From: Macrostomum hystrix
Lineage: Eukaryota > Animalia > Platyhelminthes
Length of the DNA: 64,000 bases
Direction: 5' to 3'
Assembly: GCA_950097015.1 (NCBI GenBank)
Contig: CATNEN010000009.1
Span: 1,722,898 to 1,786,897, forward strand
The notes beneath the pieces were generated by a model. The model saw nothing but the letters and a program-made list of their open reading frames with translations, had not been told where the DNA came from and did no database searches. Position 1 is the first letter of the stretch. Each line of letters opens with the position of its first letter. Positions 1 through 62,329 of this stretch are shown piece by piece. Made by a program: the position numbers and the translations under genes.

Positions 1-702
1 CGGCTGCTCTTATCTGGCGAGGCGCTCGTCTTCGTGTGGGACCTGCCGGAGGAGAAGAAGAAGAGCTTCGCGACCATCAAGGACGAGCTGGTCAAGTTCT
101 ACCGTGGCAAGGAGAACTCGTTCTGCGCCATGTCGGAGTTCGAGAGCCGGAAGCGACGCCAAGGAGAGTCGCTGAGGGAGCTGTGCCACGCTCTCAAGCT
201 CCTGTACCGGAAGGCACGCCCTGACCACGATCAGACGGTGAGAGACTGCGAAGTGCGACACCGACTGCTGGCTCTGCTGTCGAAGGAGATTCGCGAAGCG
301 TTGCTGAAAGACGCTGACTGCAGCAGCAGCAGCCCGGAGCAGCTGGCGGACCGCGCCACGGCTCTTGAGAGCATCGGCGGCAGAGGCGCCTCTGCAAGCA
401 TCGCGGTAACATCGGTGAGCAGCCAAGTGGTGGACCGGCTGGAGCAGATGCAGGAGCAGCTGGCGGACCTGGCTGCGACGGTCGCCACCATCAGCAGCCG
501 TGGACAGCGCGGTGCGCGAGGAAGAGGAGCTCGGGGGAGAGGCAGCGGTCGCGGGAAATGCTTCAACTGCGCTCAGCCCGGCCATTTCGCGGCCCAGTGC
601 CCCAGGCAGGCCGCGCCAGCCGTGCCGCCCGTGTGCAGCCGCTGCTCAGGCAAAGGGCACCGGGCCGAGGTCTGCCCGACCCCGGCTTCGGGAAACTTCT
701 GA
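1..702 (+). CDS. gag: Gypsy Gag (5'-truncated by window edge)
   Basis: Frame is open from base 1 (RLLLSGEALVFVWDLPEE...). Zinc knuckles CFNCAQPGHFAAQC and CSRCSGKGHRAEVC follow an RG-rich tract. Stop TGA at 700-702. Confidence 0.92.
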   Translation, partial: RLLLSGEALVFVWDLPEEKKKSFATIKDELVKFYRGKENSFCAMSEFESRKRRQGESLRELCHALKLLYRKARPDHDQTVRDCEVRHRLLALLSKEIREALLKDADCSSSSPEQLADRATALESIGGRGASASIAVTSVSSQVVDRLEQMQEQLADLAATVATISSRGQRGARGRGARGRGSGRGKCFNCAQPGHFAAQCPRQAAPAVPPVCSRCSGKGHRAEVCPTPASGNF

Positions 703-748
703 GGACTGGTGACCGTGGGCCATCACCAGCCCTGCCTAGCAAGGCCCA
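690..748 (+). promoter_or_regulatory. -1 programmed ribosomal frameshift signal: G GGA AAC slippery heptamer plus H-type pseudoknot
   Basis: G_GGA_AAC at 690-696 is phased X XXY YYZ in the gag frame. Stem 1 is CTGGTGA 706-712 / TCACCAG 723-729; stem 2 is TGGGCC 716-721 / GGCCCA 743-748. Confidence 0.85.
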
Positions 749-42100: not shown

Positions 42101-44624
42101 TTCTTATCGTTCATCGTAACCTTCTTATCGTTCATCGTAACCTTCTTATCGTTCATCGTAACCTTCTTATCGTTCATCGTAACCTTCTAATCGTTCATCG
42201 TAACCTTCTTATCGTTCATCGTAACCTTCTTATCGTTCTTTTAACTCTCAAACTGGGGAATGGCGGGTATCTGACGCGCGTCGGTATATGCTCAAAGTCG
42301 GCTCAAGTAAAGATGACTCAAAGTCATCATGCTCAGCAGTCCGCTCACCCAGACAAGCCGGTCTCCCACAGTGCGGCACTTCCTGCAGTGCCCGAGGCCT
42401 AGCTGGCAGCGGAACTCCGTGCACCGGCCCAAGCTGGCGTTGAAGTCCACCAGCTGCACGGCGGGGTCCCTGCTATCGGCTCCGGTGCAGAGCACCCTCG
42501 ACTGAGCCGAGTAGGACCCCGCCACTTCGTAGTCGGCGAGGCTCTCGAGGCTCAATCGCCACTGGCGCTCAGATGAGGCAGCATGGGCAGGTGTGAGACA
42601 CGGCAATGCCACAATTAGCAGCTGCAGAATCATTGAGGCCGCACAGTCGTGTGTCGCCTGCAGATTCGGTCGCGAGACAGAAAGACCGAGAATCCTAAAT
42701 CAAACGGCTTTATCCCAGGTCACGCCCTGCAGCAGCGTCCCCAATTGTTGGTCTGACTGAGCAGCGGAAGCAACAGACAGATGAAGTATCCGTGCACAGC
42801 GGCGCTTGAGAAACTGTTGCGCATCCGTTGTGTGACTTCTAGCTCATGACAGTTTCCGAGTTAGAGACAGCGCCAGTCGAACCAGCAAGCGGTAAAGGTT
42901 ACATTGCTCCCGACAATTATGCTGCGGTGAAATGGATTCCACAGGCTCACTGCACTGTCAACAGCAACATTTTTGTATTCAAGGAAACAACTATCGCATA
43001 ATTTAGCGCTATTGTCAGTCCGAGCTCACCCTTTGCCTCGAAATGCTTGAGTCCACTGTCAGTCAATGAGGCAGTAATAAAAAAATAATATTTGCAGGCG
43101 GGCTGTGGGCACTGGCACATCATTTGGTGATCCGCAGCCAGCGAAGAGGCGATTCTGCCCATTTCGTTGACTCCTGAGCACACACGCATGTTGGTGGGTA
43201 CATCTGGCCTGGACTTTCTAATTCATCATTTGGTGATCGTAAAACCCTTACCCTCCTCAAATTTTAGTTCTCTCTTAATCCATGGCATCTACTCTCATTC
43301 AGTCTTGCTAGCTCGACCACACTGCCATGAAATTATTGACAAACTACCCGCTTAAGTGGCATGGACGAACTTTTTACTAGCGACGAATCGACGAGATCAG
43401 CAGCTTCCAACCTCAGGAGATTTTATGGCTGAGGAAGTGAGCGGTATAACAGGAAAGTTTTGTCTTCCTGTTACCTTCTGCCACAGCAACAGAGAGATAA
43501 ACGCTCCACGGGCCAGAGGCCCGTTTCTGTGTGGACTCCGGAGTCCCATGAAAAGCAGCAGCGAAGCTCTGCCTCTCGCTTCCAGTGTATTTAAATTCAA
43601 GCAGCGCGCACAACAGAGGCAGAATGGGGAGAGAGGGAGAAACGCTGGGAGATTGCTAACACAGGGGCAGCTGTTTCTTTGTCCCACACGCACACGCTCC
43701 CCAGCGAACGCTCGCCGAACTTCTTCCTCATATTCCTGGGCCGTATCGATCCACGGACGCCTCGTCGTGTACGCGAATCATTGAGCCATGCAAATACAAT
43801 GTTCTGAAGCGTATTTGCAAGGCTTACAAGCGGCAGAGCGGTCTAACAGCAGCTTCCAACCTCAGGAGATTTATGGCTGAGGAGTGAGCGGCAGAGCGGT
43901 CTAACGCACCAAGGTCCCTAAACTCGATTCCGCGGCGACGCCACATTCATTTGGGGCGCAGCCGCGGAGAGAGAGAGGGTTTGTGGGGCTTGCCAAGGCA
44001 CAGTGAGAGTGTACACTGCCTGACGATAAGAAATTCAGGGCAGATATCACACCTGTGTGAGCGTGTGCCTGCGTACGGTGTCTGTGTGCGTGTGTGCTGA
44101 TGATTCAGAGAAGTGAGCAGAATTGCCTCCTCGCTGTCTGCGGGCCTACCGTCACCAAATGATGTGCCATTGCCCGCAGTATGGCTGAGCCAGCAAAATC
44201 CTACTCAGTCGCGCAAATCTTTGCCAGGCGCCTGCATGGAGCGGTCGGGCGTCGAGTTCGTGGACTCCTTCGACCCCGGCAGGGACGGTGGCGAGCGATT
44301 CCACCCCCTGAGCGTGGCCAGCCACCTGGACTTTGGCAAGTGGCCAACCACCCACTGGCTGTGGCACTACAGCCTGCGGCCTGTGCAGTCCGTGAGTTCT
44401 TCTCATTGGCAGTTGTGGGCTGGGGAGATCGCAATCAGTAATACTCAGTGCGAGCTCCCCTCGTCACTCCGCCTCACCAGGGCCAGCGCTGCTGCAGCAG
44501 CTCGTCGATCTCATTTCACAATGTCTCGCCGGAGGAGATGCGCAGTTTTCACTTCCTGCTCAGCCGGCTGCGGGTCGATGTGAGGCGGGGCCGTCCTCAG
44601 CCGCAGGGTCGCCAGGATAAATGA
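39200..44624 (+). CDS. C1GALT1: Core 1 beta-1,3-galactosyltransferase (C1GalT1-like, GT31). Exons 39200-39485, 39929-40282, 44228-44391, 44481-44624.
   Basis: Type II membrane anchor; IFCLIL...[17 protein letters not shown]; [20 protein letters not shown]; [14 protein letters not shown]; SEDVNMG|ACM...DSFD...ERFHPL; [17 protein letters not shown]. Phases consistent and no lesions. Confidence 0.9.
39745..39900 (-). mobile_element. Decayed SINE family A fragment in C1GalT intron 1
   Basis: Reverse complement reads GGTCGGGAGTTCGAAGC...GTCTTTGAGCAAGACATCTAAT...GTGCTTCAATT...GGTGCCAGTAT, resembling family A. Confidence 0.55.
40335..40690 (+). mobile_element. tRNA-derived SINE, family C
   Basis: Shares GTCCCTGAGCTCGATTCC (B box), GGGCGCAGCCGCGGAGAG and CCAAATGATGTGCCA with the copies at 43829-44190 and 58490-59690. 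Confidence 0.75.
40978..42633 (-). pseudogene. Secreted fibrinogen-related protein (signal peptide, PAN-like segment, FReD), two frameshifts. Exons 42633-42349, 41624-41503, 41401-40978.
   Basis: [23 protein letters not shown]...YWIG|LNNLHSL...FSTMDKDND...CA...[13 protein letters not shown]...GLIW...YSLKEIEML*. Frame breaks near 41592 and 41106. Could be real decay or assembly indels. Confidence 0.8.
41838..42238. repeat. 21-bp minisatellite ATCGTAACCTTCTTATCGTTC x about 19
   Basis: Near-perfect array in intron 1 of the fibrinogen-related gene; source of the MNDKKVT ORF. Confidence 0.98.
43085..43200 (-). mobile_element. SINE family C 3' fragment
   Basis: CTGTGGGCACTGGCACATCATTTGGTGA...GCAGCCAGCGA is the reverse complement of the 3' part of the 40335 copy. 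Confidence 0.6.
43829..44190 (+). mobile_element. SINE family C copy with duplicated head
   Basis: A box GCGGCAGAGCGGTCTAAC occurs twice; body matches the 40335 copy. Confidence 0.75.
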
Positions 44625-45189
44625 GACCCGGACGTTGCCACCTTGCACCTTGAGTGCGACATTTCTGCCCATGCTTTTGTCTATCACTATAAACAGGACA
44701 CACGTTTTATCGGTTACCTGTGCCAATCGGTTTTATAAATGAAGTCGAAACGATATTATACACTATATGCTCAAGAACTGTACGCATGCTTTTGTTCATC
44801 AAAGCGAGTTTTTAGCCTATTGTTTGGGGCTCCGGATTTGTCGCCGATGAGTCGGGACTTCAATCTGAAGCTCAATAAGTTTGTATCCTTGAGCACGGAA
44901 CACAAAACAATGAGTTTTGAACTTAAACAAGTCCATGGACTGAACAGCTATTCACAGCCGTTGAATGCGCACTGAAGCAGCAGTTGTACGAGTATTTGGA
45001 AACTCATAAAGTTCCAGAGATGCTGCTCATACTCTATCTATTTATCAGTAAAATGTTATTTTTTTAATTCGAGTGAAACAGGAAATCATCGATGATAAAG
45101 GGACTATTTATGTTAAACTGTCAGTAAATTGCAAAATTTTAAAACCGAAAGTTGCTCTAAGAAGGAAGCATTTTGTCACACTGGATGAT

Positions 45190-47284
45190 GTTTGTCCCAA
45201 ATCCAACACAAGCTGCTCATAGCACTGCCATATCCTCTGCTTCTGCCCCAGGAAAACCGTTTCCTGGTGTTAATTGCTTCGGTAACATGCTCAACCTGCT
45301 GCAGAGGGAGCTGCAGTTCCAGTACCGGATCTCCCTGGTCGCAGACGGGATTTTCGGCTCCCGAGTTGGAACCAACAGCTGGAACGGCATGATCGGTCAG
45401 ATCGTCACTCTGGTATTTTTGGCCTTGTGAGCCTTCCATTGGAGTGGCTCAATCTGAGTCTGTGTGTCTCGATTCACTGCAGTTTTTAACAATGGGTTGC
45501 ATCGACAGCTAACTTGTGAATGAGTTTATCAGCCGCTGATGATCGGCTTTTCATGCCTTGCAAATCAGCCAGTTTTAACTACGAGTTATCCGTTCATGCA
45601 TCCGTTCGCATTCTGGTCCCTGGCTTGGTGGCTTTTCGCCCTCGCTACGGCCTGTTGCTACACGGCCTGTCTGGCTTCCCGACTAATGTTCAGCGAGCCG
45701 GTCGAATCCCGAAAGTACAGCAGCCTACGTGAGGTGCTGGAGCAGTCGACCGTGCCCTTACTCATTATCAGAGGGGGCACGACTAGCAAATGGACAAGCG
45801 TGAGTGACACGAAAGGCAAATCAATGCTTTGAAAAGTTTTGCTAGCGATGATGAAGTAGAAAATGGCGATGAGTTTCTTAAACATATGGTCGCATTGAAT
45901 GATTTTTATTGCATCACCCATAGACAGTTGAAGCAAGCAACAATTATTTAGTCTGAGCGTGCAGCAATGCTCCAACAGTCTATGGCCAAAGTTATCGGCA
46001 CAGTAAACACAGTAATCCACATCTAGGGACACAGGGCTGAGCCTCATACACAAGTTATTTCTCGAGAAGTTCATATGTAAAAGAATGTCAGAAAAACAAT
46101 TTCAGACTTCAAACCAGCCCGACCTCAGAAGGCTGGGTGAGTTGGCGATGTCAAGACCCGAGAGCGTGGTGAATACGAGCTCGTAGCAGCTTCGAGGCCG
46201 TGACGAAGGTGAAGCACGATGACTATATTTTTATTGGCGAGCAGGGCTCCACCGAATACATCGCTGCAATGGAGTGCGACCTGGAGTCAGTGCCCACCGG
46301 ACTGCTGACCCGAGACTACGGACTGGCCATTGCAAAGGCTGAGAGTCATAGCTTGTTGAAATATAAGCAAGCATTCTATAAAATCGCGTCCATTACAATA
46401 AAATTATTTCTCATGCCTAAATGCAACTAATGTCTCTGCTTTGTGATGACCGATTCATAAGAATTATTAATCAAATTTTTTTATTCATGTCGACTTGTCA
46501 TGGAAATTTTATCCGTTAGGGCCAACACTCAAGGCACAGGGAGAGAGCACACAGCCTGGTGTTGAGAAAGTCTGGGCAGAGGTACACCTGCGTGTGTGCG
46601 TGTGAGTGCCTGTGTAACACTCTGAATAAGCTGAGGGGCCAGTGGAATGGGCAGAAATATTTCCTTGCTGATTGCGGGTCGACTGTCGCCAAACGTTTGC
46701 GGCAATGCCAGCAGAACAGCCCTAAATAATATTATATAAAAAGACGCATGCTTGGCCAACTGGGGCCGTACGTTTTCTTCGCACCACACTAAACTACTCT
46801 CGTGCGGACTTCATACTTTACAGCTAAGGTGTTGGCACCTGCCGCCCGCAGGCTCCCCGTTGAAGCAGCCTCTGGACGCGGCGATAATTTAACTAAAGAC
46901 GAATGGCGACCTCGACAACGCGATAGCGCGCTGGTTTAGAAAATCCTTCTGGTATTGTGCGCCCAAGCAGCAGCGCAGCCCAGCGCCAAGGTCGCTCAGA
47001 CCAGGCGATCTGCTCGGCATTTTTCTGCTGCTGCTTTTTGCTGCTCTTGTGCCAGCCGCAACCGCGCTGGTTGAGCTGCGATTCCGTGCCAGCGGCCCGC
47101 GGGTAAGTCGTGTTGCTTCTGTTGGGAAGATCAACAATTCGATATGCGGGGTGTGCAGATAAATTCAGATAATATTTTGTGCACTTGACAAACCATGCAA
47201 TTCATTCAGGCTGAGTCAACACCACCACAGCAGGAACTCGCCACCGTTACGACGGATGGAACAGCCGGACAGCCCTCAGTGTGA
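45190..47284 (+). pseudogene. Ionotropic glutamate receptor / IR-like pseudogene (S1, M3, S2, M4; no recognisable M1/M2)
   Basis: S1 LQFQYRISLVADGIFG...WNGMIGQ; M3 SVRIL/SLAWWLFALATACCYTACLASRL; S2 YIFIGEQGSTEY...CDL...YGLAIAK; M4 GDLLGIFLLLLF. Lesions: in-frame TAA 46890-46892, frameshifts near 45618 and 46185, and the expected donor after AAG G (about 46339) reads CT instead of GT. Confidence 0.8.
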
Positions 47285-48811
47285 TTACGAGCGTATGTTC
47301 TTTGCCTTGTTTAAACAAAAAAATAATTTTCTACATTGCCTACACAATGCATACATTTGCAAGCATAACACTAAGAACATTTGTGCATTATGTACGTAAA
47401 AAGTAAACTGAGTTATTTTTCTTTTTTGTAAAATTGAGCTGTAGACATGCACTAGTACAGCATTGTCCGTATAACAAAATAGCTAGCTTTTGCATGCATC
47501 TACATCAAACAAATTACTTATAAACTAGGTAGGACATCTAGAATACTAGTACTCTATAATAGTGGTACTAGTATAGAAAGATTAGTATTCTAGAAATATA
47601 AAAAGTCCTTGAAACTAAGGTTTCATAGCTTGCCTATTGTGCTTTTTAAGTATTGTTACACTTACACACCGTCAATACGATTGAAAATGTATCGGCTTTC
47701 AATAAGAATCGATTTAAAACAAACGGATACTCTATTTTACTTTAAACTATCAACTGCTAGTGAAGAATTAGACGTTTTTTACGAAATGCTTACTAGTTTT
47801 CTCAGTTTAACTTAAAATAATTATAGATAGCGCGAAGAGGTCTGATCATTATTAAAAAATGAACCGTAATTTGCACGTGTGCAGTCAGAGTGCATAAGTT
47901 ACTCTCGAGCTTACGCTTGATATAAATATGCAATTTTCTATGCTTAACATTCGTCAGGATGTCAGGTACCCTTCGTCAGGTACCCTTCATTCGAAATACT
48001 GATTTTAATACGTTGTTTATGCTATTAGTTCTTTGCATAGAGTTTTACTTGGAATACATTTTGCCACTATTTGTTACTGTTGACTTGTTAACTGGCTTTT
48101 ATTTTATCTCTGCAAATGAAGAGAGTCATTGCTATATCAATCTAAGCTGAATATTGCATATACAGCCTAATGCTGTTTTTAATAGGTATGATGTAGTTAG
48201 CTATTGTTAAAAAGTTTTATTTTATTGTGATAAGCTGTATAAGACAGTCAAGTGGTCCCTAAAGCAAGGTTTTAATGATATTTCTCTTTATAAAGGTTCT
48301 CTTTCATGATATAGTTTTACTTTAGTTTCACTTTTATATTATAATGTGATTGTAATTTACCTATATGTTTATAATGTTATTTTGGCTTTTATATTGTTAG
48401 CCATTACAAATATTCAAACTCTACAGTAGTAGGCCCTACTCAGTAGTGCAGTACTACAGTAGGCCTAGTAGTTATTTATGGCTAGCAAATTATTATTTAA
48501 ACTATTGGCCCTACTGGACTTTATTCTCTATGATATATTATACTGCAAAAAACTAAAAATGTCAAGTACAATTGTTGTTAACTCAGTGCTACATTTAAAA
48601 CATATGCTTGCCTAGGTAGTTGTTTTTCTAGCCTACCTGTCTAGCCTACCTACCTAAAGAATGGTCTTTTAAAATATGCTATAAAATAGCTTCAGAGGTG
48701 TTTTCTAACTTTTATCATATTATATTACTAGTGTATTTTATATAGTAAGATTAATATAGAGCCCTTTAACTAGATATAAGTGGTTTGTTAGTGATATTAG
48801 TAATATAAGAA

Positions 48812-49085
48812 GCTGTAGCCCTGTGGTTAGAGTGTCAGACTCACGACTTAAAGGTGGGGTTTGATTCCTCGCTCTACTGGAACAATTTGTGTCTTTTAGC
48901 AAGACACTTAACTCTGCATTGCTTCAGTTCACCCAGCTGTTAAATGGGTACCAGCATTAGCTAGGATAATTGAAGGTGGGTGTGGCATCTCCCAGTCCAT
49001 GGACTGATCAGCCATATGCAGCCTTCAGATGCACCACACAATAGCTGCAGCTGTGCTGTTGGCTGTGCACATCTGGCCCAATTGG
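48812..49085 (+). mobile_element. tRNA-derived SINE, family A, near full length
   Basis: A box TAGCCCTGTGGTTAGAG, B-box-like GGGTTTGATTCC, and centre GCAAGACACTTAACTC...CAGCTGTTAAATGGGTACC similar to the CORE-type consensus. Confidence 0.8.
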
Positions 49086-51200
49086 ACATGTGTAATCAAT
49101 TATTAATTAATTAATTATTAGTGAAATTAGTTATAAAGCCATATATATAGAGCATCAAGCCATTTTTTTCCTGACCAGTTGACCTAGTCTTTGTTAATAT
49201 CTAACTCTTAATTTTAAGCTTATATTTGTTTTATTTGTCTTAACACACAGACTATGTAATATTAATGATGATAATTGAAACACAAAGTTTCAATCAGAAA
49301 GCTTTTCTGATAATGTACATATGCTTGTATATAAACAGTTTCAATAGTCTACTTGTACAATACACATGTACATCAACATTTTTAGTGAGTGATATTTCTT
49401 CAGGCTTATCTTTCCATACTGTGTGCATAGCTTCCATTAACAATTTAGGTATTATTAGTTTTGTTACATGGATGATGGAAATCACGTGATTTTCAATTCT
49501 GAGCTCTTGGTCTCAGCTGGGATAGAGACATGAAAAACTCTACAGACTGCTCCAGTCCCTGCCTGATGGATTGGCTGCCATCTGAAGTCCTGACGCGGAT
49601 CCTGGCGATGCTGGACCAAACCAGCCGCGCCCGCTGCGCCCAAGCTGAGGCCGCCGCTGGTACAATCTCGCCATGCAACCTCGGCTGTGGCGCCGACTCG
49701 TCATTTACGGCAAGCCTTCGGTGATCACCGCGGAGTTGCTAGGCCGTATCTCGAGCTGGATGTCCGGCTCGCTGCTGGAGCTGGACTTTCGTGTCCGCAG
49801 TGGATGCGTGGCTGCCCTGCTATCCGAGTCACTCAGCCTACAGAGCCTCACTATATACAAGCCGATGATTTGTGAAGATGCCGAGAACCCGCTGACTGCT
49901 CTGGGTCGCTGTTGTCCTCAGCTTCGAAGCCTGCGGCTGCTCGAATGCGGCAGCACGCAGGTGCTGACTGCTAACTCTGTAGCGCAGCTGCTGGCTGGCT
50001 GTCCGAAACTGTCACACTTAGAGATCTCGTTAAACAGCGAAAGATCCTTGACATTGCTTGGCAGTTTAGCGGCTCGCCTGGTTTCTCTGAACCTTCACGG
50101 CAGCTTTCCGTTCGGTGATCTTGATCTGCCCAGGTGCCCAGAGCTGACCTCCTTAACCGTTTGGAGGCTCTTGGAGTCTGGTAAGTCTGACACACGTACG
50201 GTGAAAATGGTGCGAATGCCCTGTATACTACTTAAACACCTCTCTTATCGTCGCAAGCGACTCTAATGACTCTAGAGCCTCGTAACGAGTCGTCAGCATT
50301 GTCCGAGACGCATTCGGACGTTTTTGTAACGGCGTACTCGTATTCGAAGCGATTTGATTTTTCATTTGCTTCTTAGCTATAACTACTCAATAAGCCTAGA
50401 CGCTGGAAGCGTTTCTATTGAGGCAATCATTAGGATGATATCAGAAGGTCCTCGGAGCTTAAATCGCTGCCACCCGCTCCCATCAGGACTGGAGCCGGTG
50501 CTGCCCCGCCTGCCCTGTCTGTCCGGGCTGACGCTGCACGACTCGGACTTTATCGACGGACTCGCGAAGGCGCTGGCTGTTTCCTGCCCCGGCCTCCGCT
50601 CTGTCAGGCAGGCGTCTCCTTGGTTTTGGCCTTCGAGATTTGACGGCCGATGGTCTCGTCGCGCTTCTGAAAGGCTGTCCGCAGTTTAAGCTGCCTGGAA
50701 GTGCCGTACTGCAAGCCGCTAGACAGCGCTGGCTACCGCCGCGTTGTTGGCAGCTTGCGGCCCGACTTTCAGCAGCTGGCGTCTCCTGTGCGGCAGCCTG
50801 ACCGAGGCGGATCTGCAGACTCGGCTGCCAGCGAAACTCACTCGGCTGCAGCTGGACTTCAACAACAACTGCGGCGGCATTGAAGGGCTTCGGACCGGCT
50901 TGTCGGGCTGCTCGGGTGAGGGGGCCAAGGTCTTTTTGATAATCTTCTAGAGCAGGGGTCGGCAACCTTAGGATTACGAAATTAAATTTCCGGTTACCCA
51001 TTTCTGGAATTCGCGATACTTTAGGCGAGAGGCAAAAGTTAGCCCGAAAACATTTGACACGCTTTCAATTACATAAAATAAGAAACCCTTCCTCCCTGGG
51101 AGAAAGGAGGGTCATTACTCATTGGAAGTATTACATGTACTACGCTGGCAATCATTTTCGCCAATGTTATGCGCTTGAATAAACCATGCACAGGAATGAG

Positions 51201-52981
51201 TTAGGATCGCATTTTGCAGTAGCAGCACTTTCTTTTGATGTGACAGTTGCGCACCTCGCTGAGCAGCTTCCTTGTTTCCTCGTTGATTGCGCCCGACAAC
51301 CAGCTCTCGTGATACGCCTTGAAAATGCCTGCTCGTGACCTCAAGAACAACGTCAAAGATGTGCTTCGGGAATGCCTTCTTTCCATCCGCACGTTGATTC
51401 CCCATGGTCATTTTGAAGCGCTCAAAACCTGGGATGGAAATCCTAGACAACAGCTTGGCAAAGTACCTCGCATTGTTGCTTTGAATTTTCAAGGTATGAA
51501 GCAAGCGTGGGTCTAGGGATTCAGCAGAGTAATAGACAGGACTTTGAAAGTCTCCCATTTCATCGTACTTCGATAGTGACTGACAACGTGGGTCAATCTG
51601 TCGATCGGGATTTCGACTTTCTCAATCCGCGGAGTCTCGTGGCGTGGAGTCTCGTGCCGCCGGAGTCTCAAGCCGCGGAGTCACGAGTAGCGGAGTCTCA
51701 TGCAGCGGAGTCACGGGTAGCGGAGTCTCAAGCCGCGGAGTCACGGGTAGCGGAGTCTCATGCCGCTGAGTCACGGGGTAGCGAAGTCTCATGCGCTGAG
51801 TCACGGGTAGCGGAGTCTCAAGCCGCGGAGTCACGGGTAGCGGAGTCTCATGCCGCTGAGTCACGGGTAGCGGAAGTCCCGTGCCGAAGAGTCTCAGCCG
51901 CGGAGTCTGTGAGACGGCTGTGGTCGCTTGCAAGGCTAGAAAGCATACACTTTCCTTTATCTCCGCTAAATCCTTTTGAATCAGCTTGATGCTTGTCGAA
52001 AGCTCGTTCAACTGTTCCACTATCAAAGAATTAATGGCGCCTCCTTCATTCTGTCTGAGACGGTTGAATTCCAGAATCTTATCAACACTTCCTAGCACTC
52101 TGGTTAATGATGACTCGGAGAGTGAGCTGACTGTCTCAGTCAGAGCCGGATCTCGAATGGCTGCGTTGGCAGCCGCTTCCTGCTGATTAGTTTCTGTAGG
52201 GGGCATCCGCGCGGCTGATAACTGAAGCAGGGGCAGTCTTCTGTGCCTTTGATTTCTTAAGAATTTTACTCGCCACTGTTAAAGAAGACGATGCCTTTCT
52301 CTTCAGAGTATTGGGTAGAATAGTGGAAGGGGCGGCTTGGTGCACCTTGTTGGGAACAGTAGGTTGGTGAGCATGTACATGCACATCAAGGAAGCCGCCA
52401 GTCGAAGGTGCGTGTTGTTCTTCTCTGCACTTTTTTTCTTCTTCGATGGCCTTCAACCGTGAGCTTTTGTTAAAGTCAAGTCGGCTTGCCGAACAATGGC
52501 CTTGTCATCTGAAGAAGAACAAAAATTTTACATTGCAATATCTGAACTGTACTACAATTTAGAGTCAGTTAGTGGTATAGAGGAAAGACGAAAGAGTGGA
52601 GGAGAGGATTTTGGAGAGAGAGAGAGAGAGAGAGAGAGGAGAAAGAGGGTGGTCGAAGCTGACACAGCGGGGTAGGCGAGGGCCGCCCATTAACCTTAAC
52701 CTGCCTAACTTGTATTCCGTTGCTGCGATAAAAAGTGCAGGAAAGGACTTGTGATGTTGCCTGCTTTGAAAAAATGAGTGTGCCTATGGTCAGCCCTGCT
52801 GACCATTCCGGCAGGAACGGAGATGTTGGTTTCTTCGCTCGGCAGGAAAGGTAGAGAAATAGAGAAATGAAAAGACAAGACTGAATTATGGAATGCATTA
52901 GTGAATTGAGTAGCGTATGCAGATATGAAGCTTTAGCTCACCTGACACTGCTAAGACTTCGACAAGCTGTTCGTTCTCCAT
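51201..52981 (-). pseudogene. Two-exon coiled-coil + BEN-like-domain gene inside the hAT element (frameshifted)
   Basis: Exon 1 52981-52942 (ATG GAG AAC...TCA G|gtgagc) joins in phase to exon 2 from 52508 (ttcttcttcag|AT GAC AAG). Coiled coil IVEQLNELSTSIKLIQKDLAEIKES. C-terminal NARYFAKLLSRI...TMGNQRADGKKAFPKHIFDVVLEVTSRHFQGVSRELVVG/AINEETRKL follows BEN-domain spacing. About 4 frame breaks. Confidence 0.6.
51630..51905. repeat. 30-bp coding minisatellite (PLPVTQRHET-like units) within the BEN-like gene
   Basis: Unit GAGTCTCAAGCCGCGGAGTCACGGGTAGCG x about 8; open in the gene's frame on the minus strand. Confidence 0.9.
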
Positions 52982-55399
52982 TAGTAGTTTATGTTTATTC
53001 GCTCTCCAACTTTAGGCACTGCCTGCTTAAATTCAATAGAATCTACTAGACCATCTGCGTCAAAAAGTACTAGCAACCAAATGGTCGGTTGTCTTGATGA
53101 GCGGCGGCTCATTTTCTCTTATTCTAACTAATCGTGTTTATGGCCGAAGCTGTTTCTCATCATTTCAAAATTATTTCGATTGCTGTCCAGGTGCAAGCAC
53201 TAGATTCCAGGTAGAAAATTAATTGCTGCGTGCAAGGATGGGGAATCCCAAGTGACATCGAAAACCCCTCCCCTCGGTTTATTGGCCGACACCACCAATC
53301 CGAGAAGAGCAAGCAGGGGACGCTTTCACACAGAATTCCGCGGAAATTTGGACTCATTCCGCTGACCAACTGTATATACCCCGCGGGCTAAGAGAGAATC
53401 TTAAAGACGACGGCGGGCCGCATGAAGAAAGGGGAGAGATGAGACACAGGAGAGATGAGACAGGTGAGAGATGCAGACGGGGGTGACAAGACGCAAGAGA
53501 GATGAGACGTGGGGAGATAAGACGCAAGAGAGATGAGACGTGGGAGATAAGACGCAAGAGAGATGAGATAGGGTGTACTTTAGAATAGGTGTTAGGAGGA
53601 GCTAAGGGCCGGATTTGGGAGCTTTCGAGGGCCGCATCTGGCCCGCGGGCCGGAGTTTGCCGACCCCTGTTTCTAGAGCGATGAGGAAGCACCACAAAGT
53701 TGAGTTTGTACTAGTAAATGAAAGAAAGCTGGTCAGTGATTCGGTGCACAAAACTCTTGAAGACTTGTGAGACACGAAGCTCTTAAGTCAAGTCGGTTAG
53801 TCGGCTGTCCACTTTCATTTTTTTAGGTTGTATTGCGATCGAGAGTCTCACAAGTACGTACTGGCATTGAACAACGACACATCACATTTATCCCACAGAG
53901 CTCACCCACCTAGTCCTTACTGACTGCAACGATGAGCTTTTGTCAGCGCTGCTCATCCAGCTACCCCGCCTGCGTAACCTCCGCCTCAGCAGCTGCAGTC
54001 GCCTCACCCGACAGGCCTGGGCGAAATTGCGCGAACTCTCCGCTTTCCACACGACCTGGCCGAGTTGTGGTGCTCTTCTCCATCTGCAGCGGCTCCAGTC
54101 TCACCGATGAGTCGGTCGCCGACATCTGCGCCAGTCAGATCGCCAGGGTCTGCGGTGGCTATGCCCTGGACAACTGCAAACAGCTGACTTCACAGTCTCT
54201 CACCTCCATCGTCAGCAGCTGTCCTTGGCTGACCCGCCTGGCTCTGCTGTCCTGCTATGCTATTGCGGAGCCTCATCAACTGGCATTCCGCGCCGCCTTC
54301 CAGCACCGCGTGGAACTGGAGCTTCGTGGTGCGCCCGAATGGGCCCTAGATTTGTGTGACTCGGATGCGGAGAGCTAGTCAGGCTGTTGCTCTTTCCTGA
54401 GGCTTGGTCTAGCGCTTCATTGAGCTTGTCAAACTGTCAGCGTCGATACACAAGCGACTACTTTGATGTGACTACTTTCTAATTCTTTCAAGTGCCGATT
54501 TTGTATTAATTGGCTAATTTATTTCAATGAGGGTTTTGTAGGCCAAACGCAGTTGTTGGTAGTAAACGTTCAAAGCCAAGTAGGCATCCACAATTTGTTA
54601 TATATTGAATATATTGAATGTACAGTATGAGTGTACACAACGGCAATGACGAAATTGGCATAGTAAGTGTGTGAGATTACTAAGAGAGAACCTCGTGCAG
54701 AGTTACGCAACGCATATCGCATGGCAGAACTACACAAAAGTGCACCAAAGAATAACTTAGGTCACCACAGAGGGTAAAACATGCCCTCCTTTAAACCTGC
54801 CTTGGCCTAGTTGTCAAAACGCCGAAGACTAAGGTGCTGACTGTGCGCCCAACATTCCAGCGAAGCTGACAAGTCCGTTACTTTCAGTCCGTTACCATCC
54901 CGACTTCTAATTGATAAGTCAGAAAGTCAGCAGAAATACTCTGCAGGTGCTGCATTAAGGCAATAGCACATTATGCCAGTAAATAACATATAATGCGGTA
55001 ACTTAATAAACAGTAGAACGTGTGTGTCCCATTTGGTCAGGAAAATCGTCAGCAAGCATTACTCTAATTAACAATACAACTTCCAAACTGGGGCTCTGCT
55101 CTGGCTTCTTGGATTTTGTATCGTAAAAACTAAAGCTGCGTTTTTTAATAAAGAAACGGAAGCCTTACGAGTAAACCTTCGAGCAATGGCCAGGAAACCT
55201 GTACGGAAGGCCCCGACCAGCGTGCCTCATTGTAGAGAAACTAATTCAAGCAGGAAACATGGCAACGAGCTGATGGGAAAAGTTTTGTTCCAGCCAAAAG
55301 TGAATTAAAAGACTTGACGTTGTTCCTATGTATTAAAAATCCAAAAGTATGTGATAAAATACTACTCAGCTTCTTTGTTGCAAACTGTGCAACGCAGGG

Positions 55400-56050
55400 A
55401 GACTGAGCTAATCATCTTGAGCAGCACTTTGCTGCGAGTGACTTAAATCTCTTCGACGCTACTCCGGCCTCGGAGATTGACGGAATCGAATGACTCTCGG
55501 CGTTGGACCAAATGGATTGGATATCAATCAACGTCTTCGAGAATTGGATACGGACTGAATGTATTCAACGCATGGAGACGATCCGCGAAGCTATTTATGG
55601 CATTGTCTCTCCGGGTTAGGACTGGCTGATTTCTGTTGACGTTCTCAAACCAATGCACTTTTGATACAATATGGCATGTATTTTCTCGCTAACTGCGAGC
55701 ATACGAGCTAACTTTGAAAAAGTATATTGAAAAAGCTTCGGAAAGCGGCCAAAAAGATTTTTCCGCATACTGTTCGTACTTATGAAGCTGCTGACTGGAC
55801 TTGCTGTTGTTAAAGTCGGACGTTGTAAAAAATTTGGCTAAAGACTAAACCTTTATTTACGTGTTTAGGTGGCACGTACTGAAGTAGGTCGTCCGTTCTG
55901 ATTCAACATAGAATCCCGCTCGTTGTCATAGGCAGGACTCGGCAAAGTTTTTCATGAAGAAAGATGAAACGTTTTCAGACCGAAAAGAATTGTCCAAAGC
56001 ACGACGGAAGACTTTCCAGTAGGGGTTGAATTCAGAGCCCAGACTGCTTA
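55400..56050 (+). mobile_element. Decayed non-LTR retrotransposon RT-proximal fragment
   Basis: Stop-ridden translation IREAIYGIVSPG*DWLISVDVLK...MACIFSL...RILFVLMKLLT...LSKA resembles the LINE SPGxD..VLK / RPISLL..KL / DLSKAFD series. Confidence 0.35.
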
Positions 56051-56566
56051 TGAGAGCAACATTTTTTGCTGCAAATTAAACTGTGAGGGGGACTGTCTCA
56101 TGTCTAACAAAGAATCTGTGAGCTGCGGCCGGAAGGATGTGACTCCGCGTGACTCCATGCTTGCACTGGAGTTCCGCGGAATTGGCGACGCACTCTAGAA
56201 AACTCGTTGCAATAGTGCTTTTACTTTTTAATCAGTATCTTAAAAAGTAATGAAAGACGGATAAAATCGTAGCAAAGTTGTTAACAAACTTCGTTTTATA
56301 AACAAAGCACGAACTGACGTCTGTACTTTGAATTCGACTGAGGATCGTGTACGCATAGTAAAAGTGTTAATTTAGTGGTCAGGCAAAGCCAGGGTAAGAT
56401 GAGACGGACTTTAACTACTTCTGACTTAAAGATAAGGTAAGTAAGGCATTTCTCATGTCGTCTTTAACAGGGTTCATCGGACGTGATAGCATATGCTTAT
56501 TCGTTGCTTGGGTCTTGTCAAAAATTTCAGTAAATAACCAGTATCCTTAGTTGCCGCTTGGTTGCA

Positions 56567-57773
56567 TCATCCGCCGCAGAGATTTTCGAGTTCTAGGAAC
56601 TGATTAAGGGTGAGCGATGCTGTGACGAAGCCCCAGCACTCAAGCCAGCCGTTGAATGGCGCTGGCCCGGCGGTATTGCAGTCGCCGATACGAAGACAGT
56701 TGAAGCTATCCATTGCAGCGGGGTCGCTGCCGAATGTCTTTGGCGAGTCGGTGTCATACAGCACACCATTCATGTAGACATGAGATTCATAGTTCGACCC
56801 GGTGAAGCTCACTCCGAGGGAGACAGTTTTTAAGATCCCATCCGTGACCAGCCCGGTGTTGGAGATGATCTCAGTGTACTGTTTGGAGCCGTCCACTAAG
56901 TAATGCCTAGACTGGATTTGACCGTCGGCTCGGGTGTTGAAGTGGCTCACGGAGGCGCTTGAGAGACAGCTGCTAAAGGAGCTGAGACACTTTGCTCTAA
57001 AAGTCAATGACGATGTAAAACTAAGTCACTGGTTTTATTTATTTAAAAAGACTTCTGACTTGGATTTTCTTACTCTGAAGTCGCAGCTAGCTTTCCTCGA
57101 AAGTAAATAGTAAACTTATTGTTCAGTAAGATGTACTGACTAAAGCCATTCGTGCTGACAGCAATGAAGGAGCTGGAGCTAGTGTTTAGGCGAACACCGT
57201 TGAGAGGGTCCTGCTGGGCAATGTTTTGAGGTACAGCTGTGTAGAGAGAGCCGGCCAGATTGGAGAAGCCCACTTTAAAGTTGTACCAAATCACTACTCT
57301 CGAGGCGAAGCTCAAGGCTGAAATTCCAGGAACTGCGACAGTCGCCGGTCGGGCCGTCAAGTTTTCTGTCAACGGCATGCTTCTGGCTGCAAATCATAAA
57401 AAAGGGAGCAGTGGCCTCTTAATTTTCTACAAACTAGAGGTTAAAACAAGAAAGTGCTCTTACTGGAACCACTACCTGTCCGTTTCCGTCTCACACTCAT
57501 TCTGGGGCTGCAGCCGGGAGTCGAAGGCGGTTGGGCTGCCAGGCTGTAGCATTCGGAGCTATCTTTTAGGTATACGGAGAGGCGACAGTCGCCACTCAAA
57601 GTGCAGCGAAGCACACATTCCGACTCACTCGGAGTCGACACGGCCGCCTCAGGCAGAGCCGATGGGCAGTCGGAGGTCACCAGGTCGTACACAGCAGAGC
57701 AAGCTTCGTACGCCATCGTTGAACCAATTAGAAGCACAAAGAGCGACAGTTTCCAAATGTTACTGGCAATCAT
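56567..57773 (-). CDS. Secreted protein with PAN/apple-like and LamG/ConA-like domains. Exons 57773-57476, 57386-57073, 56981-56567 (approximate).
   Basis: Signal peptide MIASNIWKLSLFVLLIGSTMA; PAN-like SESECVLRCTLSGDCRLSVYLKDSSECY; LamG-like VYMNGVL...LRIG...FNGWLECWGF. GT-AG introns join in phase (1, then 2) with no lesions. Confidence 0.75.
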
Positions 57774-58037
57774 ATTGCTGCAGCCCACTAAACTTTTAGT
57801 TAATTTGTTTTAAAAAAGTTTCTGTCGCAAAGTCATGCAAGGTCCATTCGAAGAGAATGTGAATTTGAAGCGATGAGGTGCTAACCTGTAGTGCATGGTC
57901 TATTGAGCAGTTACTAGCTGATTGGTCCATGAAATATTACATGTCTCTGCCCAGTGGCAGCCAGTTTTGCCAGATAGAAACAGAAGGAAGAGCCTTCTAG
58001 AAGATCTGGGGATGAAAATTGTATTAATGGAAAGACA

Positions 58038-58305
58038 GGAGTTTTTAGCCTGGTGGTTATGAGCTTCTGACTTTCGACCGGGGGTCGGTAGTTCGAAACA
58101 CAGCCCTACGGAGACAATTTGTGTCCGTGAGTAAATATCTAATTCCCCAGTGCTTCAGTTCCCTGAGCTGTAAAATGGGCACCAGCATTAAATGGGGTAG
58201 AAATTCGGACACGTGTGGCGGCCTTCTCAGTCCACAGCCTTTGAGTAGCTGTACACAGCCTTTAGAAGCGCCGATAAAAAGCTTCGGCTGTACATCTGGC
58301 CCGGT
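58038..58305 (+). mobile_element. tRNA-derived SINE, family A, diverged copy
   Basis: TAGCCTGGTGGTTATGAGC...GTAGTTCGAAAC...GTGCTTCAGTTCCCTGAGCTGTAAAATGGGCACCAGCATT...CATCTGGCCC matches the 48812 copy. Confidence 0.7.
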
Positions 58306-58489
58306 TTTATTTCCGTTCGCTGGCTGTCGAACTTAGAGTGCTCCAGTTCTTAGATAGATCAATAGACCAAGTGACGAGTCTGCGGCAGCGTTTGCTGTGT
58401 CAAACTGCGTCCAGAAATACTCTTGTCTGTTCAACTCGTGCCCTGATGTATTCTGTGGAAACTTTCAATTCGGGGATTTGCTTAATAAT

Positions 58490-59690
58490 GTAATAATAAT
58501 TGCAGGAGGGCTGTGGGCAATGGCACATCTCATTTAGAGACAGTAGACCCGCCGCCATGCAGCGAGGAGGCAATTCCGCCCATTTCGCTGATTCCTTTGC
58601 AAACACCAACACGCACACGTGTACTTTTTCATCGTCAGGCAGTGTAAGCTTTCACTGTGTTGTAGTTTATCGGTACCGTCGGCAGTTCGCCGACGCGGTA
58701 GTAGGGGTTCGGGTACGGACCACCCAAAGCTTGCCGGGGGAGGAGGGATGGGAAGCAGCGACCCTCGAGGCGTTCCGAAACTCCGAGGAGAGATGGGATG
58801 GGCTTGGAGCGTACAGACACTCGCTAAGCCCGGCACAGAAGGATGCGCGAAGGCTTTGACTGCGAGCGGGTAGCCACTCGACAGCCCCAGAGAGAGGTGG
58901 ATGACGGTCTGGAGGCGTACCGACGCTTCGCAGACTCGAGGGAAGACTCTGGAGGAGAAGGATGATGATGATGAGCTTTTGGCAGCAGCAGAGGTCGGGC
59001 AGAGGAACAAGGTTTGAGCATGGACAAATAACTCGTTAATGCTTATCTTACCGAGAGGGATCGAACGCTGCACTCATGGCAATTAGTGTAGCTCAGGCTG
59101 CGTAGTTTATTATTGTATGGATTGTTCGCTTCTAACTCAGGGCAGCGTTCTCACAATAGTACTCGGGCGGCGCGGGGGCTGGCCACGGGCAGCGCGTGCT
59201 AATAAATAACAGCATGGGGTGAGGCGAGGGCATAGGGCTGGACGGGATAGGGCTAAGCCACGCAGGGCTGGGGTGGGAGCAAACACACAAGGCTGAGAGC
59301 CGAGAGAGAGAGAAGGAGGCCGGCTAGCCAATCAGAAGTCTCCTTGGCGAGAGGCCTGATTGGACTAGCGAAGACGGCGCAGGGGGCAGCCAATGGGCGA
59401 GCGACAAACAACCATAAAGGAGGGTGCCTAAGCCGGGGCCGGGCAGAACTGGATTGAGCAGGTGGCCGGGGTGGAAGGTTTAGAGACGCAGGGGTCGGAG
59501 CAATGTCATTGTGAGATGCAGCTCACAACAACTGTGCCTTGGAGGTTGGCCCTCAAGGCCGTAAATTGCACAACAAGCCCCCAAGCCTGCTCTCCGCAGC
59601 TGCGCCCCAAATTAAAGTGGCCTCCTCGCGGAATCGAGCTCAGGGACATTCAGTGCGAGAGTCAACTGCGTTAACCGCTCTGCCACCGAC
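58490..59690 (-). mobile_element. SINE family C split in two (59690-59531 and 58657-58490) by a solo LTR
   Basis: Minus-strand head GGGGTCGGTGGCAGAGCGGTTAACGC...GTCCCTGAGCTCGATTCC. The body rejoins as AAGGCACAG/TGAAAGCTTACACTGCCTGACGATG across the insertion. Confidence 0.8.
58658..59530. mobile_element. Solo LTR, 873 bp
   Basis: Termini TGTTGT...ACAACA (6-bp inverted repeat); 4-bp TSD ACTG at 58654-58657 and 59531-59534; internal CCAAT boxes and a CATAAA TATA-like motif near 59412. Confidence 0.82.
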
Positions 59691-60679
59691 CCCCTTAGGG
59701 ATACGCATGTCTAGCCGGTTAACTAAAAACATTATCTGTGACGTTACGATTCTACCTTGCTCATGACTGCCCCCCGCTCACCAAACAATAACTGAGCCGT
59801 TTCTTTGTCGATTCAAGGTTCACCATATGCGAACGACTATAACTATTCTGAATTGTTCTCATAAAGATCAGGTTCTGAATAAAAGCTCAAGGGTACTCAA
59901 GGTACTAGAACAGTATACATAATTTTAGACTTTTGCAAAGCTCAAGCAAGGCAGAGAAAACCAATGTTGAATATCTTACTTAAAACAATGCGACAATCAA
60001 TCTAACTAAGCTGCATGTGAAGCACTAGCTCTCACAACTTGCTCTTAGGTCCAGAGCGTCGTCAGGAAAGTCGTTTGTACTAAATTATTGAGTTGAAACT
60101 GACTTCAGAATTATTATTTTGCCGTTGGCAAATTGAGTTTACGAGCTAACACGATAAAGATGCGTCGTTGCATATTTAAGTTTCAGGCTTCACGCTGATG
60201 CGTTACGCTCGTACTATTGTTCAGTACCTGTTTTAATGATTATTCCCATTACAAGATGAACTTTAATTCAATTTATCTGACAAAGTTTCTAATTGAAATG
60301 CATGCTCAAATCGGTATGATAATGTAAGGACCGCACAATTGCAATTATTCTTGCTATTTTTCTTTATTAACCAGAAATATTATATTCGAGTCCATTTTAT
60401 TTGATATAATAGAAATCAATCCAACAGGAATGGATTATCACATTTCTCTCTCTGGAAAGAATATAGTGTTGATCAACTATTTGGTATTATGCTCATTTGT
60501 ATTTGTTAACGGGAAAATTTTACCAGATAGCCAATATTCCAATTAGATATTTCGAGCTGTCTTAGTTGGAACATATGCAGTTTGATTGCTTTGCTCACAG
60601 TTGTCTACGAGACGAGGTTCACGCCAAACTGCCTGGGCCAGTTACGCTTTGAAGTCGACTCGCAATTCAGACAGAAAGC

Positions 60680-62123
60680 TCACGAGTTGCTCAGGAGCAG
60701 CAGTACCTGCAATACGGAAAAGTTTTTAGTTCTTTCCAAGCCTATAAGAATCAGATTGTGAGCTTTCCTGGTTACGAACGCAAACAAGTCGAGAGAAGAC
60801 TGAAGCAAACAAGTTGAGAAAAGAAGACTGAAGCAAACAAGTTGAGAAAAGAAGACTGAAGCAAACTAGTTGAGAAAAGAAGACTGAAGCAAACAAGTTG
60901 AGAAAAGAAGACTGAAGCAAACTAGTTGAGAAAAGAAGACTGAAGCAAACTAGTTGAGAAAAGAAGACTGAAGCAAACAAGTTGAGAAAAGAAGACTGAA
61001 GCAAACTAGTTGAGAAAAGAAGACTGAAGCAAACTAGTTGAGAGAAGAAGACTGAAGCAAACTAGTTGAGAAAAGAAGACTGAAGCAAACTAGTTGAGAA
61101 AAGAAGACTGAAGCAAACAAGTTGAGAAAAGAAGACTGAAGCAAACTAGTTGAGAAAAGAAGACTGAAGCAAACTAGTTGAGAGAAGAAGACTGAAGCAA
61201 ACAAGTTGAGAAAAGAAGACTGAAGCAAACTAGTTGAGAGAAGAAGACTGAAGCAAACTAGTTGAGAAAAGAAGACTGAAGCAAACTAGTTGAGAGAAGA
61301 AGACTGAAGCAAACAAGTTGAGAAAAGAAGACTGAAGCAAACTAGTTGAGAGAAGAAGACTGAAGCAAACTAGTTGAGAAAAGAAGACTGAAGCAAACTA
61401 GTTGAGAAAAGAAGACTGAAGCAAACTAGTTGAGAAAAGAAGACTGAAGCAAACTAGTTGAGAAAAGAAGACTGAAGCAAACAAGTTGAGAAAAGAAGAC
61501 TGAAGCAAACTAGTTGAGAGAAGAAGACTGAAGCAAACTAGTTGAGAGAAGAAGACTGAAGCAAACAAGTTGAGAGAAGAAGACTGAAGCAAACTAGTTG
61601 AGAAAAGAAGACTGAAGCAAACTAGTTGAGAAAAGAAGACTGAAGCAAACAAGTTGAGAAAAGAAGACTGAAGCAAACTAGTTGAGAGAAGAAGACTGAA
61701 GCAAACAAGTTGAGAAAAGAAGACTGAAGCAAACTAGTTGAGAGAAGAAGACTGAAGCAAACTAGTTGGTTAGAAGCTACATCATCGAAAAACCTACTCC
61801 AACTTGTGCTTTGGCACGCGACCTTCTACAGGCCTGGAAACACCCTCTGAATGATTTTACCCGATAAACCTCCCTGTCACTCGCCTTGTGTCCGAACAAC
61901 ATCGCAAGGGTGCCGGAGGCGCCAACCACCTGGCAGGCGATCAGCAGCACGCCTCGAAGCGGAGCGACGTCGTCTGGCAGACAGAAGCCGAGCGCCAGGC
62001 CCACCAGAGCTGCGGCGCTGACGTTGCCGATGCTCGCTGCGGTGAGGCGAGCATCGCCCGGGTCCAGGGGGTGCAGATTGCGCGTCTCCCAGGCGAAGAA
62101 CAGTCCGAACAGCAATTGGATGC
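60680..62123 (-). CDS. Class C GPCR, GABA-B-receptor-like, TM5-TM7 exon (62123-61885) plus a probable short last exon (60706-60680); upstream exons not identified
   Basis: GIQLLFGLFFAWETRN...GDARLTAASIGNV...LAMLFGHK matches GABA-B TM5-7 (LLLFGxFLAWETR..NDS..IG.SVYNV...FVPK). Donor is GC (AAG|gcgagt). Confidence 0.7.
60780..61770. repeat. 28-bp intronic minisatellite GAAGACTGAAGCAAACTAGTTGAGAAAA x about 35
   Basis: Direct tandem array with two variable positions per unit. Confidence 0.98.
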
Positions 62124-62329
62124 CTGCGGGGCAGAGCCGATTCTATTTACCTGCTTGTGCCCCCCTAATTGCTGACCATGCTCAATCAGGCATCAACGAG
62201 GGACGTATTTCTATGAAGTCTCTGATAAAATCAGTCTAGATCAATATTCTATTAAAGGACCACTAGGACTAGGTGTTGAAGGAGAGGAGACTACATTTCT
62301 ACATGTAAAGATGTCCATTTTCTAGATGT

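Follow-up and report, generated by a model that had tools for sequence, protein, structure and literature searches.

We analysed a 2.7-kb insert in a 64,000-nucleotide stretch of the Macrostomum hystrix genome (contig CATNEN010000009.1, here C9:1722898-1786897; the window) and searched 220 Mb of the same genome in 42 contigs. The insert is very probably a hAT-type miniature inverted-repeat transposable element (MITE) that holds a one-ended fragment of a second, Tc1/mariner-type transposon, and this fragment carries a gene for a BEN-fold protein that would have come from a transposon with two genes. An earlier note on this DNA had read the unit as a Pack-hAT, that is, a non-autonomous hAT element that acquires host genes as DNA, here one with its intron retained, and carries them to new sites. 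Positions without a prefix refer to the window, and the coordinates of the features are collected in Table 1.

The outer ends and the 8-bp duplication are of hAT type, and the outer element is an abundant, small MITE. Its terminal inverted repeats (50953-50968 / 53654-53669) are 94% identical over 16 nt, including a 13-nt core without mismatch, and the duplication TTCTAGAG lies on both sides, in agreement with the 13-bp repeats and the bounding 8-bp duplication described earlier. The window has a single extra T (53670) between the right MITE end and the duplication; two sister copies lack this T and show an exact duplication in perfect register with the MITE ends. When the 2.7-kb element was used to search the genome, high repetition was limited to its last ~300 bp, and a 16/31-bp tandem repeat (53433-53568) lies close to the right MITE end. 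Among the loci examined, the MITE family has 21 complete copies of 297-1300 bp, which all share the first 26 nt (CAGGGGTCGGCAACCTTATATACCCC) and the last 26 nt and stand in 21 different 8-bp duplications, all with a central TA and often of the form nTCTAGAn. The terminal 14-mer occurs 123 times genome-wide, against 0-1 times for a reversed control, and its occurrences are mostly paired in inverted orientation, 270-1600 bp apart. The duplications, the short terminal repeats beginning CAGGGG and the variable internal tandem repeats all resemble those of hAT-type MITEs of the MER1/Charlie-like kind, with the difference that no autonomous partner with the same ends was found in the genome among the terminal-repeat sites listed. 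There are at least 40 hAT dimerisation-domain matches in the genome, and none lies within 5 kb of the MITE terminal repeats among the sites listed (100 of the 123).

Within the window, the MITE reads for its first 18 nt, gives way to 2.4 kb of foreign DNA and then resumes at the same point (...CAACCTTA / insert / TATACCCC...). Excising 50971-53374 regenerates an unbroken MITE start, ...CAACCTTATATACCCC. Because the MITE resumes exactly after the insert, both ends belong to one MITE and not to two insertions; separate insertions at different sites were ruled out by this continuity.

The inner 2.4-kb unit is part of another transposon, of Tc1/mariner type, and does not consist of host gene fragments. 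It was found without the MITE at three further loci, each copy being a deletion derivative. A sharp end, ...CCCAACTG followed by TA, is common to all copies and reads on the opposite strand as TA/CAGTTGGGTCAGCGGAATGAGTCC..., a Tc1-like terminus. By pattern search, the 24-mer at this end recurs in inverted orientation 3.3 kb away at C1:0.96 Mb, 2.2 kb away at C38:26.2 Mb and 12.7 kb away at C1:3.96 Mb, and nowhere else. The two arms at these three loci start with CAGTTGGG and match over ~39 nt, identical save one position, and a TA stands outside both arms at each two-ended copy, as it does outside the single repeat in the window. The TA target duplication and the repeats starting CAGT are shared with Tc1-like (Sleeping Beauty-type) DDE transposons; readings of these ends as Helitron, LTR, piggyBac or Harbinger termini were dropped after the CAGT...TA repeat pairs had been found. 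Each terminal repeat also holds a 10-bp palindrome, TTCCGCGGAA. CCGCGG-centred palindromes occur near the ends of both families (CCCGCGGG in the two subterminal regions of the MITE, TTCCGCGGAA in the Tc1-like repeats), which may be coincidence. One of the two-ended copies, copy A at C1:0.96 Mb, splits the pol gene of a Ty3/gypsy-type retrotransposon, with RNase H and integrase (L061:4450-4974, 8105-8968). Taking the copies together, we infer that the source was a low-copy Tc1/mariner-type element of ~5 kb in which terminal repeats of ~39 bp enclosed two convergent genes, both with introns; its second terminal repeat and the half with the transposase are missing from the window fragment.

The junctions bear on how the fragment entered the MITE. 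On the right, the last base of the Tc1-type repeat is followed by TA and then by the MITE, and once the insert is removed only one TA remains in the MITE, which fits a TA duplication. The left junction falls at a point within the source element: copy A continues ...GGACTTTAGG... where the window has ...CAACCTTAGG..., with an overlap of 3 nt exact (TTA), or of 6/7 with one mismatch, and this TTA is also the last 3 nt of the 18-bp MITE start. A TA duplication to the left of the insert was considered and rejected, the TA there being the MITE's own and the junction lying inside the source element. We infer the following order of events. A ~310-bp hAT-type MITE would have entered an intron of an F-box-like LRR (leucine-rich repeat) gene once, generating the duplication TTCTAGAG; a ~5-kb Tc1/mariner-type transposon would at some point have inserted into this MITE, at a TA 16-18 bp from its left end. 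Deletion from the far terminal repeat inward, perhaps after cleavage there, with rejoining at the TTA microhomology, would have removed the transposase half, leaving an immobile, one-ended remnant in which the BEN-fold gene was retained. The region of at least 20 kb around it would finally have become threefold, by segmental duplication or as an uncollapsed assembly, which would account for the three composite copies described below. Alternatively, the fragment could have entered by template switching, as filler DNA in the repair of a break in the MITE, with no need for integration and deletion; the internal position of the left junction and its short overlap suit this account. A random switch would rarely begin exactly at a transposon end, however, and both the exact start of the right junction at the last base of the repeat and the single TA restored on removal are what integration predicts, so that we regard template switching as improbable.

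Apart from the window, the composite of MITE and fragment gave two full-length matches, C2:9326543-9329258 and C2:9396402-9399115, with flanks that match those of the window. The shared flanks extend over at least 10 kb per side at 99.2-99.4% identity and cover 42518-62208 (against C2:9318000-9327999 and C2:9388000-9397999), so that the assembly has three copies of a region of at least 20 kb. Since the three composites share their flanks, they go back to a single insertion, and either a later duplication or a threefold assembly accounts for their number. An empty-site pattern had no match in the genome. Whether the copies are real or products of assembly, there is no evidence that the composite moved as a unit.

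These results refute the Pack-hAT claim: the cargo occupies a single site and is itself another transposon. The unit is indeed bounded by hAT-type ends and an 8-bp duplication, and a sister copy contains a complete, intron-bearing gene, as gene capture would require. Its internal DNA, though, has a Tc1-type repeat joined to the MITE at TA and is a fragment of an element that is TA-flanked and two-ended elsewhere; searches of the genome at the DNA and protein level yielded no parental or paralogous locus outside the Tc1-like element; and in place of copies with different target-site duplications there are the three composites with common flanks. Capture and movement of a host gene by a hAT element thus seems highly improbable. 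As in Pack-MULE and other transduplicating elements, non-autonomous terminal repeats bound a gene-containing unit, the difference being that here the interior is another transposon, with no parental locus and no second insertion site. The second possibility raised in the earlier note, of a family that routinely carries a BEN gene in place of a transposase, survives in spirit; the family is of Tc1/mariner and not of hAT type, and the gene stands beside a transposase. As first proposed, the locus would have added a rare example of hAT gene capture in animals, whereas a nested, decayed transposon is ordinary.

Differences between the composite copies suggest caution as to their number. Over 5.7 kb, the window and the C2 pair show 80 differences, 59 of them 1-bp indels and 21 substitutions, and 53 of the 59 indels fall where the same base occurs at least twice in succession. 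The two C2 copies are mutually inverted, and neither is more than 85 kb from the end of contig C2. The triplicate region could be a segmental duplication or an uncollapsed, unpolished assembly; a pattern of 1-bp homopolymer indels is typical of long-read consensus errors, and assembly may account for the additional copies, for the frameshifts in the window and for its extra T at 53670. That the genome has only one locus, or two alleles, with the gene intact, is a reading favoured by the excess of 1-bp indels in runs, the few substitutions and the placement of the C2 copies, and we rate it as somewhat short of an even prospect. As a practical warning, then, the three "copies" and several of the frameshifts should be read with assembly in mind.

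The transposase of the source element adjoins the second arm at the three two-ended loci, its only locations in this genome, and is absent from the window, in keeping with the earlier observation that the element contains no transposase. Reading inward from the arm, an open reading frame (ORF) with two helix-turn-helix (HTH) regions and an FTDE motif ends in KHPLKV; after intron-like frame changes there follow the segments HVWAGIS... and QDNDPKHTS...SPDLMSPVE and then a C-terminal piece, giving the motif series HTH region, FTDE, KHPLKV, QDNDPKH...SPDL..E. The D-to-E segment has a single match in the Protein Data Bank (PDB), the catalytic domain of Sleeping Beauty (5cr4, E 1.9e-4). Relatives of the first exon carry Pfam HTH_Tnp_Tc3_2 (PF01498) and DDE_3 (PF13358) at E 1e-18 to 6e-9, one of them being named a Tc1-like transposase, and the Atlas feature score to Tc1/Tc3 HTH clusters is 0.95. 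Single transposase exons fell below the Pfam cut-off, and a word search with the last exon gave no match.

The order of a paired-like HTH and then a DDE domain with QDNDPKHTS...SPDL..E is that of Sleeping Beauty. Several features set the source element apart from Tc1-like DDE transposons: a second, convergent, spliced gene of ~2.4 kb, introns in the transposase, a D-to-E spacing that reads 35 instead of 34, and a very low copy number with deletion derivatives only. The KHPLKV end of the first exon is common to this genome (L061:7330-7908) and to a marine metagenome relative, P0005 (L070:543-1127); the intron position after KHPLKV is thus apparently shared, which suggests that this intron is conserved within a Tc1-like clade.

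The second gene lies on the minus strand, next to the single terminal repeat in the window. The copy designated C2a (L002) has an uninterrupted two-exon model of 491 codons, with exon 1 at 2060-2228, a GT-AG intron at 2229-2662 (434 nt, phase 1) and exon 2 at 2663-3969, open over 434 codons. In the window, the frame has at least four breaks, mostly homopolymer indels. The ATG at 52982 proposed as the start of a complete gene is in frame only through an indel; in the sister copies the frame extends to an ATG 129 nt upstream (window 53112). A complete spliced gene, as described in the earlier note, is therefore found in the C2a copy, the window copy being spliced in layout but frameshifted. The phase-matched 433-nt intron and the coding 30-bp repeat were recovered as described, and for the proposed coiled coil a long helix is present in a single-sequence structure model. 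Exon 2 encodes in turn a basic Ser/Thr-rich stretch, this helix of ~70 residues (pLDDT 64-80 in that part), about nine Thr/Pro-rich 10-residue repeats, and a 139-residue C-terminal region in which a Cys-rich tail follows the BEN-fold domain. By DNA and protein searches, the gene occurs in this genome only within the Tc1-like copies.

An exhaustive HMMER search of 1.84 billion representatives returned three relatives of the protein: P0001, a 333-aa protein from a JGI metagenome with 47% identity and the same architecture; P0002, the Macrostomum lignano hypothetical protein BOX15_Mlig025727g1; and P0003, a shorter fragment of 142 aa from the same JGI metagenome sample as P0001. None of the three has a Pfam domain. 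The 417-residue ORF had no match in a word search of 5.8 billion proteins, and two metagenome scans for the relatives' DNA were likewise negative. Convergent ORFs adjoin P0001 and could be transposase exons.

With a four-sequence alignment, AlphaFold2 modelled the C-terminal domain at pLDDT 79 and pTM 0.73. We compared the model with 48,161 PDB representatives in a structure search independent of Foldseek, and the five top matches were all BEN domains: BEND3 BD1 (5jno, Z 8.8), NACC1 (8yzs, Z 7.9), Bsg25A (4x0g, Z 7.6), BEND6 (7yul, Z 7.4) and BANP (7yuk, Z 6.8), with rmsd of 2.2-3.7 over 81-99 residues and the next match at Z 5.0. By Foldseek, BEN domains scored TM 0.44-0.49 (query-normalised) and were the sole matches above 0.4 among those listed, with weak E-values (>1). 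We accept on this model that the C-terminal domain has the all-alpha BEN fold, and make no claim of membership in the Pfam family. In having one BEN-fold domain at the C-terminus, preceded by a helical or low-complexity N-terminal part, the protein resembles the BEN-solo proteins (Insensitive, Elba1/Bsg25A, BEND5/6), and the domains of BEND3, BANP and NACC1 are among its best-ranked structural matches. The protein differs from all of these in having no Pfam BEN match, in being encoded by a transposon and in that its relatives are seen only in M. lignano and one metagenome sample. It also has a tail rich in Cys, of the pattern C..H...C..C, and a conserved Cys close to the start of the domain, features that are not known from solved BEN domains.

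Several results, besides the short overlap at the left junction, weigh against the account given so far. No copy in the genome retains both genes complete, and the ~5-kb two-gene element had to be pieced together because only overlapping deletion derivatives survive. At E 10, Pfam BEN (PF10523) matched neither the window pieces nor the intact sister ORF nor the three relatives; the gene was not among the matches of a genome scan with PF10523, and phmmer and a family profile found nothing relevant among PDB sequences. The BEN-like domain of the earlier note thus stands by fold and fails by sequence, and BEN membership would rest on a fold predicted from four sequences, with Z scores at levels that helical folds may reach by chance. 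Among the copies, exon 2 carries 10/423 substitutions and the intron 4/422; the exon is not lower, and there is therefore no sign of purifying selection between copies. Finally, neither a similar transposase nor terminal repeats lie within 6 kb of the M. lignano homologue.

The last two results also speak for a passenger view, in which the Tc1-like element once acquired the BEN-fold gene from the host and the gene has no role in transposition. Tc1/mariner elements normally have the transposase as their sole gene, and the family is tiny, with four insertions. On the other hand, the gene is found in this genome exclusively inside the element, and since its repeat-adjacent 5' part recurs at each of the four insertion sites, the gene travelled with the element each time. 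A related Tc1-like transposase also lies close to a Pfam-BEN gene on a marine metagenome scaffold. Weighing these, we consider the passenger view a real possibility, though not the probable one.

BEN domains, as in Insensitive, Elba, BANP and BEND3, are sequence-specific DNA binders, and the BEN-solo layout is that of a helical dimerisation region with one C-terminal BEN domain. Because the gene lies between transposon repeats, has been carried to at least four sites and has the BEN-solo layout, we propose an accessory or regulatory DNA-binding role. Though the evidence is weak, the protein would most likely be a dimeric, sequence-specific DNA-binding factor of the Tc1-like element, analogous to TnpA in En/Spm or to the Harbinger Myb-like protein. 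The palindrome in each terminal repeat is a possible candidate for its target. Two-component DNA transposons are known from En/Spm (TnpA and TnpD) and PIF/Harbinger (a Myb-like protein and a transposase), and the source element would likewise have, within one pair of terminal repeats, a transposase gene and a second gene for a putative DNA-binding protein; it differs in being of Tc1/mariner type and in using a BEN fold. We speculate further that a macrostomid Tc1/mariner lineage, perhaps shared with other marine animals, is a true two-component system in which the BEN-fold protein binds the ends and is needed for, or regulates, transposition, and that BEN partners have been recruited repeatedly by unrelated superfamilies in this genome; we hold this to be rather unlikely.

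Two observations from outside this genome concern the same subject. On the scaffold TARA_SAMEA6041341_METAG-scaffold_4257 (L069:1806-4949), the related Tc1-like DDE_3 gene is 1.6 kb from the Pfam BEN gene (27 bits), in divergent orientation. Clear terminal repeats bounding this pair were not found, and hhalign detected no similarity between the BEN-fold family and the Pfam-BEN gene of the scaffold. In M. lignano (NIVC01004238; L068:3803-4078, 5111-5353), inverted arrays of a 16-bp unit, ATCACAAACCCGAAAT, lie directly upstream of the BEN-fold homologue and resemble transposon subterminal arrays. A literature search on BEN domains together with Tc1 transposons returned nothing relevant.

Table 1. 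Features of the nested insert, its host gene and the further copies of the inner element
Feature	Position	Strand	Remarks
Host gene, upstream LRR exons	49673..50915	+	F-box-associated LRR type; putative splice donor GT at 50916
Left 8-bp target-site duplication of hAT-type MITE	50945..50952	.	TTCTAGAG
MITE start, 18 bp	50953..50970	+	13-nt terminal repeat CAGGGGTCGGCAA + CCTTA; same 26-nt start in 21 MITE copies
One-ended Tc1/mariner-type transposon fragment	50971..53372	-	One terminal repeat + BEN-fold gene
CCGCGG-centred palindrome sites	50976-50990, 53385-53392, 53643-53650		
Exon 2 of BEN-fold gene	51201..52508	-	Stop TAA 51203-51201; frameshifted in window, open in L002:2663-3969
C-terminal 139 residues with predicted BEN-fold domain	51204..51620	-	= L002:3550-3966; approximate coordinates (indels)
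30-bp coding tandem repeat	51629..51893	-	8.8 copies, Thr/Pro-rich 10-residue units
GT-AG intron	52509..52941	-	433 nt (434 nt in sister copy), phase 1
Exon 1 of BEN-fold gene	52942..53112	-	Matches L002:2060-2228; broken by frameshift near 52981
Tc1-type terminal inverted repeat	53335..53372	-	Reads CAGTTGG..., holds palindrome TTCCGCGGAA; then TA at 53373-53374
Remainder of hAT-type MITE	53375..53669	+	Tandem repeats at 53433-53568, right terminal repeat at 53657-53669
Right 8-bp target-site duplication	53671..53678	.	TTCTAGAG; extra T at 53670 missing in sister copies
Host gene, downstream LRR exon	53932..54378	+	F-box-associated LRR type
Inner element, copy A	C1:962848-963561		Element positions 16-311 joined to 1998-2422
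Inner element, C38 copy	C38:26217478-26218984		Element positions 215-449 joined to 1137-2422
Inner element, copy C	C1:3964951-3966278		Element positions 1137-2423

The composite stands in a gene of LRR type. A first part (49673-50266) matches Pfam LRR_At5g56370 at 25 bits, slightly below the cut-off, and further LRR exons at 50354-50915 and 53932-54378 flank the insert on both sides, which places it in an intron of the LRR gene. The intron location given previously is thereby upheld, with the F-box label applying by LRR type only.

Some observations on neighbouring and related sequences may be added. Inverted ends of the MITE type lie 3.1 kb apart at C38:13879901-13882995, far wider than usual, and could mark another composite or a longer family member. 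Slightly past the right end of the window in the duplicated region, a hAT dimerisation domain (C2:9315576-9315743) lies within a 1139-codon open frame, and a similar 1091-codon frame occurs at C3:1930009; both could be autonomous hAT elements or domesticated genes. Elsewhere in the window are a 1250-codon open frame for a Ty3/gypsy pol with protease, reverse transcriptase, RNase H and integrase (558-4310) and an intron-less open frame of 1487 codons with PH, MyTH4 and RA-like domains (20725-25188).

The interest of the locus lies in the inner element, in which the textbook one-gene Tc1/mariner type is found with an additional, spliced gene whose product has a predicted BEN fold. If this protein acts on the element's own ends, the design of a transposase plus a DNA-binding partner, known from CACTA and Harbinger elements, would extend to Tc1/mariner, and there would be a possible route by which BEN-solo host regulators arise from transposon genes.

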